From: Lepidodermella squamata
Taxonomy: Eukaryota > Animalia > Gastrotricha
NCBI GenBank assembly: GCA_047495785.1
Contig: JBLDXI010000054.1
Coordinates: forward strand, 1,302,001-1,366,000
DNA: 64,000 nucleotides
Direction: 5' to 3'
Shown here: positions 36,400 through 41,149 of the stretch, in pieces
How positions within the stretch are numbered: the first letter of the stretch is position 1
Layout: every line of letters starts with the position of its first letter
The notes under the pieces: generated by a model
Told to the model about the DNA's origin: nothing
Seen by the model: the letters and a program-made list of their open reading frames with translations, nothing else
The model's database searches: none
Program-made: the position numbers and the translations under genes

Positions 36400-37824
36400 A
36401 AAGCGGTCAAAGCGGTAGTAAAATTCGACAACTACGCGTATTATTCGCGTACACCCACGGCTTTTTGTGAATTGAAAGTTCTCGCAGCGAATTTCGGTAT
36501 CGTTATCAAAACAATGCAACGCGTTATAGATGTGCGCTGGGAGTATTCGAGTTTCAACTCTCTGGCCTCACCGGCTGAAAACAACTCTTCGCCTTCTCAG
36601 TAGCAAGCTCGAAACGGCGAAGACGAGGAGAAACAAAAATATTCAAGATCTTTTTTAGTCTAGATTGCTAGATTGTTAGGAAACGACCCTATAGCTACAA
36701 GCACCCAAGACAAAGTTCTGCCCGAGGGATTATCACATGTGCATTGATTTGCCAAAACTTACGATGAAATTAATTTTCGATGAAAACAAGATGCTACAAG
36801 TAAAAGCCATCGGTTTCGGCGTAGGTTTCTGACATCACTTTGATTTATTGGGAACACGAACGTTACAAATTTCTCTCAGAATTAGCTAGTTTGTCGGCGA
36901 TGGCGGAGATAGAAATCGAAGTCAAACAGCAACTTGTTTTGGCCGTGAATAATGAAAGGCAGTTTGAAGGCTATTGACAGTTAATCGAAGAAATGTTGAA
37001 AAACGTTGAGAAAGACGTTGATAAAATGCTGGAACAATTTGGCCATGAAAACGCATGGAGACTTGAAGATATGCAGAAAGCCGATGAATTAGGGCTGCAG
37101 GATGTCAGGATACTGGAGCGGATGCAAGAAGAGACTTTGATGAATTCGAACCCCCAATACCAGCAATTGGACAATATTCTTCGCAATGGGATGGGCTATT
37201 ATGAGTCATTGGATTTGAAGAAACAATTGGTTAATCGAATGAGTCGTGAGGAATAATTGAGAAGCTTCTGCGTGCAGAAATCATTAGAAAAGATAGGTCC
37301 TAGAGTCGACCGGCACGCAGTCTACTCTGGTTGTCGATTCTTCTGCAAAGGTGCCCTGCTAGAATATGATGGGCCACCATGGCAAATTTGGATGCCCGTA
37401 ATGCGTTATCGAGGGGTATCACCTGGAGGGCGCAGTGCGCTTTCTCTTTCAAGAAGATATGCTGCTCAAAGATCACAAGAGTTGAAAGTTATGACGCTCG
37501 CTATTGAGCAAACTGGTAAATAGACCCGTGGCTTGATTCTTCTGATAGCTTGAAATGCTATAGCACGATCTGCAAGCCTAGTTACATACGACATTAACCC
37601 AATGAGTTCAACGATAATAAGCCAACCGCCCAACAAGGTGGCGCGGCAAGATGCCGAGGGATTTTACCTACTTCTCGGCGATGAAGGAACTGTTCTAGTG
37701 CGATGGACGTATTTCAGCTACCATTCTCTCCACGCAGCGGCTAACAACATCTCAGCGATCTGCAAGCAGCTCAGTAGCAAGCTTGAAACGGCGTGAAGAG
37801 GACGAGTAGAAACGGAAGATTCAA
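36400..37824 (+). mobile_element. possible highly decayed LTR-retrotransposon pol relic, interrupted by the DD41D element
   Basis: Weak fragments only: PAENNSSP (RNase H AE.NYS-like) and GRVE (integrase GRVER-like). Many stops. Confidence 0.3.
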
Positions 37825-38114
37825 TACAGGGTGACTTTTTTATAGTGGCAATAATCTTTCTTAGCAATATTTGCGTGTAGTACTGCATTACGCTTGTATG
37901 GCGAGTACTTGCACAGCCCGATGTCGATATCCTGTAGAATCAGATTAGACATGTTTACATGTAAAAAAACTTGGCAGTGATTGAGCGCGTAATAATTAAC
38001 AGTGCCGCCGCGACCTAGGTCATGTTGAGCCCCAACGAACGAAACAATTTAACAGGTGCACGAATAATTGTCGTTAGTCACATCTGTCAGTGCAAAATTT
38101 TCTCTGAACAAAAA

Positions 38115-39226
38115 ATGCCTGGTTCTTACTACTCACCTGTCGAACGCGCGGAAGTGGCGCTGCTATATCACGAGAAAAAGAATGCGAGTCTGGCGGCACG
38201 ATTATTTCGATCTAAACATCCTACTAGACCGAAGCCATCTGTTAACACGGTTAAAAGAAACTACACGCGCCTTGTAAACACAGGTAATAATTTATTACTT
38301 AGCTCACGCAGGTGATTAATCGGAATTATTTTTTCTGCATCAGGGGTGATGACGGATTTGCCTAGAAATCAACTTCCAACGAATCAGGTCGAAAATGTGG
38401 TTATCAATTACTTTACGCAACATCCCAGCAAGTCACTTCGCGATGCCAGTCGGGAGCTGAATTATAGCCCTGAAAGAATCAGATTAATTTTGAAAAAAAT
38501 GGATTTCACCCTCATAAATTGCGCCATGTGCAATCACTTAATCCCGCCGATTTCGAACTGCGATTATATTTTTCGGCGTGGTTTGACGCTCAATGTGAAT
38601 CTGAAATCGGTTTCGTGTGGGACATACTGGTTGGCGATGAGGCTAAATTTCGCTTAAGTGGTAAGGTGAACGTGCAAAACTTCCGTCACTGGTCGACATC
38701 CAACCCACATGAGATAATTGATAATCAAGACCAGGGTGCAGAACGCGTTGACGTTTGGTGTGGAATATTTCGCGACACGATAATTGGTCCCTATTTTTTC
38801 GAGGGCAGTGTTAATGGCGCGAAATATTTGAAGATGCTCGTTCAATGGCTGTGGCCGCTGATTCGAGAACGTGTGGGTCCTAGAAGCATGTTTATGCAGG
38901 ACGGCGCCCCATCACACTGGTCTCTCAAGGTGCGCAAATGGTTGGATCGACGATTTCCGCACCGGTGGGTTGGACGCGGAGGTCCGGTACCGTGGCCTCC
39001 TCGTTCGCCGGATCTAACGCCACTCGATTTTTACCTATGGGGTCACCTCAAAGACAAAGTTTATCGGGGGCGAATCGACAGTATGGATGAACTGAAGGAA
39101 AGAATCCGAGTCGCCTGTGGAGAGGTTACGCAGGAAGCGTTGGCTAATGTGCGGAGAAATTGGCAGGAGCGCGTTCGATCATGCATTGCGCATGGCGGCC
39201 AGCATTTTGAACAGCTTTTTCGCTAG
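38115..39226 (+). CDS. DD41D transposase; exons 38115-38283 and 38344-39226, with a 1-nt frameshift in an A7 run at ~38493-38499
   Basis: N-terminal HTH regions. Catalytic motifs GDEAKF, MQDGAPSH and PRSPDLTPLDFYLWG, with 41 residues between D2 and D3. 60-nt phase-1 intron. One extra A restores LKKNGFHPHKLRHVQ. Confidence 0.9.
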
Positions 39227-39364
39227 TTTCAAGGTGTGATTGTGTGAGGATGGTTTGAAAAGTTCAGAAATTTGAATAAAAAAATCGATTTTTTTCCAAT
39301 GTCGTCAATTTATTTCTTTCAGAATCGCGCAGTAGTTCACCTTCTCAACTCAACACCAGGTTTT

Positions 39365-39780
39365 TTAATCGTCCTCAAGGAGAGAACGAGCCTTGGCGAC
39401 GATAGAAGTCGCAGAGCGACCCGGCAATCGAGCGCGATAAATGCTGTCGATAAATTCGATATATACGCGCAAATTGAATTTCGTGGCTTTGCGGCCCGTG
39501 ACTCGTAGAAATTTAACAAATGCGCGACACACGTTGACCTCGTGGTCCCCCCAATTCGAGTTTTCTTTGGCTAAATTACAACATTTTTTTAGCAATATTT
39601 CTTAAATATTTTTTTAAAATACTCACGCAAATCAAGTAAAATGTCTTTTGTGGGAAGACCTGGCATGGGAGGAAGGTTATCGAGCGTTACGTCAGGATCT
39701 AACTCCCATGTCCTTTTTCTTTTTCGCTGTATTCCAGAGCCACCTCCGGGCGAGCTTTTGGCTTTTGGCGAATTAACCAT
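39365..39780 (-). CDS. 119-aa spliced ORF inside the DD41D element, convergent with the transposase; exons 39780-39627, 39570-39365
   Basis: ATG, then a 56-nt phase-1 GTGAGT...TTTAG intron joining two ORFs in frame. NLS-like QRKRKR; helical C-terminal half. Confidence 0.7.
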
Positions 39781-41149
39781 TCACGAAAAACAAACGAATT
39801 TCTTTTAAGCTAACCAAATGCACCGGCAAATTTTAGGACTGAATGGTAGCTGCGCAATGCCCTAGCTTTTTATTGCCCCACGCAGTTGCTGTCGATTTCT
39901 TCAAACTCTTGCAACCCGAGCTACTAATAAAACCGAGACAACAGTGCCAATTACTGAAACGCGCCGCGCGCCAAATCACTGCAAAAAACATCTTTTGCTA
40001 ATGTGGGACGCGTTGCTCGTACAAAACCAGGTCATTCTTGCGAACAGTACTCATATATGAATGCACGATTTCGCAAGTATTAGTTATATTGCCACTATAA
40101 AAAAGTCACCCTGTATATTGAAATTTTCCTTGACCGAATTCAGCTTTCTCGCTCAGTGTTGGAGCCGGGCTCTGGAAAACTCATCGCTCAGCATACTTTT
40201 TAATTATATCTAACTAATCAAATCTTATCACTTTGATAATGGCACCTAGCGTTTCAGAGGGAAGTTCCAATCGTTCTATGATGACGGAAATCGTGCTGAA
40301 GTTCTCAGTCAATTTTCATTTAGGATCGCGTATTTTAAAATTTTATGCTACAAGGTTCACTTGTTTTTTTATTTTTGAGTCATTGATTATAAAAATAAGA
40401 AATCATACATTTACTTACCAATATCAAGCTCAATCCTGAGGTGGCAGAATATATTTCGATAGTGAAATTTGAATTCGATTAAGGCATCAAATTTGCAACC
40501 ATAACGCAGGGGCAGAGTCACTGAGACTTACTTCTGAACTGAGTCTGAATGAAACAAAATAAAAAGATAAAAAGAATTAGACCAAGTCAAACTATTACTA
40601 CCTGGTGCACACCATCACGACTCAGCCTCGTTCTCGAATCCGGAATCAGCCAGTAATCAGCAAGTAATCGGCGCAGACTCAGCTAATATGAAAAAGAATA
40701 CGTCAGTTAAATCACAATTTTCTATGAATAGCCGCAATTGATTTTATATATTTTTAACTTTACATGGAATCTAGTTGTATTTTAATTACCTTTTTTGGTT
40801 TTTTAAGAGTACAGTCTAGGTCATACTATGCATTTATTCATTCATCCTTCAACTATATTATTTGCCGCAGGCGATTAGGCTAGTGCCACGTGGCGATGCT
40901 GGAAGCATGAACGGCGCAGCTTCCAGCGCCAGTTGTAAACATACCGCCGCTCATTACTTGGGTAATTTTCTCGGTTATAGCGTATCAAATATCAATAAAG
41001 CACCTATGGTCGTATTATCCTCGGTCTTGTTGTTATCATATTCCCACGAACCAGGTCAAGGCTACCTTTCATTGGCGCCGAGACCCGGCTAGGTCTTTTC
41101 GCCGCTGCGTTGAAAGTAACGAGCTACCAAGCGACGAGCAACGTTCAGA

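Follow-up and report, generated by a model that had tools for sequence, protein, structure and literature searches.

The element at positions 37827-40113 of a 64,000-nt window of the Lepidodermella squamata genome (GCA_047495785.1, contig JBLDXI010000054.1; coordinates are window positions) is a young DD41D Tc1/mariner transposon with two genes: a transposase gene and a small convergent gene of two exons, referred to here as the accessory gene. Judged from sequence comparisons, the second open reading frame (ORF) is a real, element-borne and intron-containing gene under selection, encoding a small protein with a cluster resembling a nuclear localization signal (NLS) and a predicted three-helix fold. 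Its product is probably a nuclear protein that binds DNA. Tc1/mariner elements are the textbook self-sufficient transposons with one protein, and to our knowledge their transposition needs no host factor. It is due to this one-protein autonomy that Sleeping Beauty, Mos1 and Himar1 are usable as tools across kingdoms.

The arms of the element (37824-37853 and 40087-40116) are 100% complementary and comprise a 27-nt terminal inverted repeat (TIR) plus the TA on each side (for an overview of all features see Table 1). TA duplications and TIRs as in the Tc1/mariner (IS630-Tc1-mariner) superfamily were found in the copies of both the window and contig C19. The genome searched comprises 121 Mb in 151 contigs (labelled C1, C3, C19 and so forth), in which the element occurs three times: in the window, as a full copy on C19 (G000:C19:3070314-3072605; 98% identical) with both genes intact, and on C23 (99% identical), where the right end is missing and the region upstream of the accessory gene is shortened. 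The exons of the transposase gene were joined by script to test the reading frame. Exon 1 matched DUF4817 with 24.9 bits, above the Pfam cut-off of 22.6, and exon 2 matched DDE_3 over the full profile (2-146 of 146) with 26.5-27 bits, just below the cut-off of 28.6. Counted on the window translation as well as on the intact C19 protein, 41 residues separate the second and third catalytic Asp, so that the DD41D label holds as a spacing signature. In the window and C23 copies the transposase is frameshifted at an A-run, and translation ends at residue 160. The window copy is therefore non-autonomous, and the C19 copy is likely the autonomous source of the element. Relatives of the transposase elsewhere in the genome are 40-56% identical.

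The accessory gene starts with an ATG at 39780; its first exon of 154 nt ends in phase 1 ahead of GTGAGT, the intron (39626-39571) closes with AG, and the ORF totals 119 codons, a QRKRKR cluster among them. The ATG lies 333 bp from the end of the element. Each gene is followed by an AATAAA (39275-39280 on the forward and 39314-39309 on the reverse strand), so that the 3' ends meet in the 138-bp spacer. An earlier note on this DNA had described perfect TIRs bounding 37827-40113, a DD41D transposase gene with an intron, and a convergent two-exon ORF of 119 amino acids (39780-39627 / 39570-39365) with a canonical 56-nt intron, a QRKRKR signal and about 330 bp of upstream sequence within the element. 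All of this was confirmed, including coordinates, frame, ATG and stop of the ORF as well as the GT-AG borders of both introns (60 nt in the transposase gene; 56 nt, phase 1, in the accessory gene). The note had also suggested an accessory gene of a two-gene mariner lineage, and the existence of such a gene is supported by homologous genes in at least nine lineages and in an additional DD31E family; however, the frameshift of the window transposase and the Myb/homeodomain-like domain of the small protein had been missed.

The accessory ORF is intact in all three copies of the element, and the sole indel of the gene falls within the intron. As the three copies are 98-99% identical and differ in the gene by only two synonymous substitutions in exon 2 and three non-synonymous ones in exon 1, a dN/dS analysis within the family has no power, which leaves room for the view that the spliced ORF is a chance frame antisense to non-coding DNA of the element. 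This view is contradicted by the homologues of the gene. The two exons were searched separately, and a six-frame search of the genome with the single exon 2 sequence yielded, beyond the three copies, a match at E 3.7e-6 plus weaker ones; mariner-like transposases adjoin each of the loci from this search that were read. A profile of seven members (A2) recovered 32 places in the genome, and loci outside the profile reached E-values down to 1.7e-15. With such significant matches of exon 2 at other places in the genome, the ORF is not a product of chance. In addition, intron phase and position are common to the homologues: in all eight members with the junction read (window, C3a, C7, C4, C30, C50, C42 and the DD31E family), exon 1 stops after the first base of a codon, with the GT next, and the AG of the intron lies 5-8 codons ahead of a nearly invariant Trp. 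The members also have a common layout of exon 1, with basic residues near the start, followed by a proline-rich stretch whose last residues, (D/E)L, lie at the splice site. Together with the confident fold prediction and the ratios of substitutions between lineages (both below), these findings render a chance frame extremely improbable.

In this genome, at least nine diverged lineages have a homologue of the accessory gene beside a mariner-like transposase. By tblastn with pieces of the transposase, a mariner-like transposase was found no more than 1.5 kb from the domain on C50, C42, C30, C4, C7 and C13, at two loci on C3 and at the copies of the window family; for a locus on C31, the adjacency is given by coordinates only. 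On C4 (L044:665-2110) the accessory gene is situated inside perfect 27-nt TIRs starting with TACAGGGTG, the same start as in the window element. The C4 element is a deletion derivative of 1.44 kb in which the accessory gene is intact and only the first ~180 residues of the transposase are left. A homologous convergent two-exon gene is also carried inside the elements of a family of six copies (L056-L061; G000:C1:4352671, C10, C11, C15, C24 and C35), which are about 2.16 kb long and 99.9% identical up to a common right boundary ending in TA. This family looks recently active. Its transposase is Tc1-like: D and E are separated by 31 residues, and DDE_3 is matched above the cut-off. It belongs to a clade different from that of the window transposase. 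The earlier note had raised the possibility that homologues always lie inside DD41D TIRs; the C4 copy does lie inside TIRs, but other members belong to the DD31E family or have no Tc1/mariner transposase nearby.

Comparison of the lineages indicated that the gene does not evolve neutrally, one of the outcomes that the earlier note had considered. Between the accessory genes of C4 and C30, the proportion of non-synonymous differences (pN) was 0.16 and that of synonymous differences (pS) 0.74 (saturated); for C50 against C4 and C30, pN was 0.35-0.37 and pS above 0.8. For the window gene against other lineages, pN (~0.5) and pS (0.67-0.81) are both high, and selection on the window's own gene therefore rests on homology and the common gene structure. 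The same data bear on the explanation of the gene as a passenger: a Tc1/mariner element would have picked up a host Myb-like gene, which then passed from element to element by recombination and persists because it is expressed and harmless, or self-serving, with no role in transposition. Members of the domain family do occur away from detected Tc1/mariner transposases (e.g., L065-L069 and L047), as would be expected from such an origin. However, in lineages with saturated synonymous sites and pN far below pS, the accessory gene is consistently found 3' of the transposase and with the same intron, whereas a useless gene is expected to decay as fast as the flanking non-coding DNA. The small size, the nuclear signal and the predicted DNA-binding fold are also as expected for a transposition factor. 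A mere passenger thus appears improbable, and a one-off fragment of a host gene, as also considered in the earlier note, does not agree with two-exon homologues of the same intron phase and position beside transposases in at least nine lineages.

The fold of the small protein was predicted from an alignment of 14 exon 2 domain sequences (A3). AlphaFold2 returned a three-helix bundle with a predicted local distance difference test score (pLDDT) of 92, with helices at residues 8-24, 30-40 and 53-66 plus a one-turn helix at 44-47. An exhaustive VIA structure search placed homeodomains first (Z 5.0-5.4), followed by the GT-1 trihelix domain (Z 4.8 at 23% identity), with Zeste, ARR1, LUX and TRF1/2 as further matches; for the overall range of Z 4.2-5.4, the tool warns that values around 5 are common for small helical bundles. 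For this reason, the reading is kept to a homeodomain-like/Myb-like three-helix DNA-binding fold and does not extend to membership in a family. The structure checks proposed in the earlier note gave a three-helix bundle at high confidence, but Foldseek returned no significant match for the exon 2 domain, with c-Myb, GT-1, TRF2 and other Myb domains among the best weak ones. Of the Myb aromatic core, the first Trp is nearly invariant and a Tyr/Trp follows about 30 residues on, while the third position is non-aromatic (K-A). No Pfam model, Myb included, reached threshold on either accessory exon; one paralogue matched PF00249 at E 0.23, and matches to c-Myb and B-Myb among PDB sequences were not significant (E 0.3-0.8). 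The possibility that the domain is a duplicate of the DUF4817 helix-turn-helix of the transposase was rejected (hhalign probability 0.1%).

Relatives beyond the genome were few. A HMMER search with A3 against 1.84 billion representatives identified five proteins spanning the full domain (P0001, P0002, P0009, P0011 and P0018), all singletons or pairs from Logan, ENA or JGI assemblies. Many of the remaining matches cover only the C-terminal half of the profile, repeatedly, and four such proteins that were retrieved are repeat proteins with a W...E...L...LPGR(T/S)...A motif; two of these four matched Myb_DNA-binding of Pfam above the cut-off, and P0011 matched it weakly. Neighbours in the ESM Atlas were clusters of Myb_Rap1, HTH_TIMELESS and Myb (score 0.83), a weak lead. 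A word-indexed protein search yielded nothing with A3 and only the query itself with P0001, and a metagenome scan with alignment A5 yielded no relative. The same scan with P0018 yielded one contig of 2.8 kb (L074) with a neighbour resembling a 2OG-oxygenase; as there is no transposase on this contig, the distant homologue looks like an ordinary gene.

A small protein of this kind has a counterpart in PIF/Harbinger elements. In Harbinger, the transposase is carried into the nucleus by a Myb-like protein that also binds the TIRs, and neither gene is dispensable (PMC9392472, PMC4122938). Like the window element, PIF/Harbinger elements are cut-and-paste transposons with TIRs and a separate small protein with a Myb/SANT-like three-helix domain beside the transposase, and the small protein of the window shows an NLS-like cluster and a predicted fold of this kind. 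The two systems differ in that the window transposase has a DDE_3 domain, a DUF4817 helix-turn-helix and a TA duplication, in contrast to the DDE_Tnp_4 domain and 3-bp duplication of Harbinger, and in that the accessory domain falls below every Pfam Myb threshold. By this analogy, we tentatively propose that the accessory gene encodes an NLS-bearing Myb/SANT-like transposition partner, an assignment whose likelihood we place a little short of even and which is nevertheless the leading model among the functions considered. The small protein would enter the nucleus, as in PIF/Harbinger, bind DNA of the element at or near its ends, and recruit or import the transposase. Two proteins would then take part in efficient transposition of these lineages, and the window copy, having lost its transposase to the frameshift, would depend on the intact C19 copy. 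An inner inverted repeat of the element (Table 1) is a candidate second protein-binding site.

Several results weigh against a partner of this kind. Apart from the range of Z-values and the Pfam result given above, a search of the element for subterminal repeats revealed no repeated motif beyond the 19-nt inner inverted repeat, and several related transposase loci, among them a family of four copies, had no accessory match nearby in the genome searches. The accessory gene is in tandem and not convergent with the transposase gene on C42 (L054, G000:C42:1520953-1524141) and at the C3b locus (L052, G000:C3:440811-444008). Pairwise identities of transposases and accessory proteins were not correlated (Spearman -0.06 for 17 pairs), in a comparison that was underpowered with ~65 residues and differing transposase segments. 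The window accessory protein is 35% identical to that of the DD31E family and thereby as close to it as to proteins of its own clade. The two unrelated transposase clades and the tandem cases together are better explained by an exchangeable module than by a cofactor in tight co-adaptation.

These observations are compatible with a passenger and also with a different role, in which the small protein would serve as regulator rather than as cofactor: a repressor in competition for the ends that holds down copy number, or a host-directed factor for anti-silencing or chromatin targeting that acts whatever the transposase. VANC, the anti-silencing protein of VANDAL Mutator elements, is an example of the latter, and the small protein possibly resembles it as an accessory DNA-binding protein encoded by the element and serving it in a function other than catalysis. 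That unrelated DD41D mariner-like and DD31E Tc1-like clades have the accessory gene in common, that the protein does not co-diverge with the transposase and is free in orientation, and that the gene was kept intact in the C4 deletion derivative after loss of most of the transposase would all be accounted for by a regulator. However, the low power of the co-divergence test reduces its weight, and a DNA-binding fold suits either role. We consider a regulator unlikely, though by no means negligible, beside the transposition partner. A broader scenario that includes the partner role is that several unrelated Tc1/mariner clades (DD41D mariner-like and DD31E Tc1-like) became two-protein transposons, dependent on an exchangeable NLS-bearing Myb/SANT-like partner that moved between families, and that the Harbinger-style split evolved independently; this may have happened, but is rather doubtful.

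Within Tc1/mariner, the element resembles canonical members, including the DD41D rosa/Visitor elements, in its signature, i.e., the TA duplication, short perfect TIRs, a DDE/D transposase with paired helix-turn-helix motifs, the DD41D spacing, and MITEs (miniature transposable elements with inverted repeats) with the same ends. In contrast to these, the window element and its relatives bear a second, spliced gene, whereas typical mariner elements have a single ORF (PMC7325037, PMC4122938). The ciliate TBE and Tec elements are multi-ORF members of the Tc1/mariner group (PMC7325037) and likewise have extra ORFs beside the transposase. However, their extra ORFs are different and no Myb-like partner has been described for them, while the window element has one small two-exon gene. 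Full-text literature searches turned up no account of Tc1/mariner elements with a Myb-like partner gene, in a coverage without most subscription journals and Repbase, so that novelty is not proven. If it is true that a second gene is conserved in several lineages, part of the superfamily would have separated catalysis from DNA targeting or nuclear entry, like Harbinger; alternatively, the elements would bring their own regulator, and the intact C19 copy and the MITEs offer a direct test of both meanings. In the first case, a Harbinger-style division of labour would exist within a superfamily held as the model of single-protein autonomy. The elements would also be a new source of small DNA-binding proteins for domestication by hosts, and annotation pipelines for transposable elements that expect one ORF would call for caution.

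Table 1. Positions of the features of the two-gene element in the window.
Feature	Position	Strand	Basis or remark
TA target-site duplication, left	37825-37826		C19 copy likewise has TA on both sides
Left terminal inverted repeat, 27 nt, perfect	37827-37853	+	Inverted-repeat search
Inner inverted repeat, left arm, 19 nt, 84% complementary to 39967-39985	37971-37989		
Transposase exon 1 (DUF4817 helix-turn-helix)	38115-38283	+	Pfam
Transposase intron, 60 nt, GT-AG	38284-38343	+	Spliced frame open over 350 amino acids in C19 copy
Transposase exon 2 (DDE_3, DD41D spacing), frameshifted in window copy	38344-39226	+	
A-run, 7 A (8 in intact C19 copy), frameshift breaking the window transposase	38493-38499	+	
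AATAAA 3' of transposase stop	39275-39280	+	Read from sequence
AATAAA, 51 nt past accessory stop	39309-39314	-	Read from sequence
Accessory exon 2, predicted three-helix Myb/homeodomain-like domain, including stop	39365-39570	-	
Accessory intron, 56 nt, GT-AG, phase 1	39571-39626	-	
Accessory exon 1, NLS-like basic cluster plus proline-rich motif with (D/E)L at its end	39627-39780	-	
Region of 306 bp upstream of the accessory gene within the element, presumed promoter	39781-40086	-	Present in C19 copy
Inner inverted repeat, right arm	39967-39985		
Right terminal inverted repeat	40087-40113	-	
TA target-site duplication, right	40114-40115		

The MITE family mentioned above (L004-L030, e.g., L004:1501-1790) consists of at least 17 copies of ~290 bp with TA duplications. 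Their terminal 28 nt are identical to the ends of the element, and ~100 nt match at 79-89%; these arms of ~100 nt stem from the left end of the element, and a short central piece resembles window positions 39886-39932. An Rfam scan of the window gave no match.

Some members of the domain family stand in other surroundings. An open frame of 288 amino acids at L067:1462-2325 contains two tandem domains, with no Tc1/mariner transposase within 1.5 kb; the same distance around L065 and L066 also contains none, and L065 adjoins the ORF of a non-LTR retrotransposon. L067 and L065/L066 possibly represent genes of the host or components of other elements. On C29 (G000:C29:3565106-3567594; L037/L047), a member lies ~1.9 kb from a degenerate Harbinger-type DDE_Tnp_4 transposase. 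A general link of the domain family to Harbinger was rejected, as this was the only one among 57 PF13359 matches in the genome near a member. The two tandem elements have features of their own: the accessory gene on C42 (L054) shares the phase-1 intron and encodes a long acidic tail, and the accessory protein of C3b (L052) has its basic cluster at the C-terminus. Between the transposase and accessory genes of the C3b element, at L052:1210-1300, a 9-nt unit (CCTAATCCG/CCTAATCCA) is repeated in a short tandem array.

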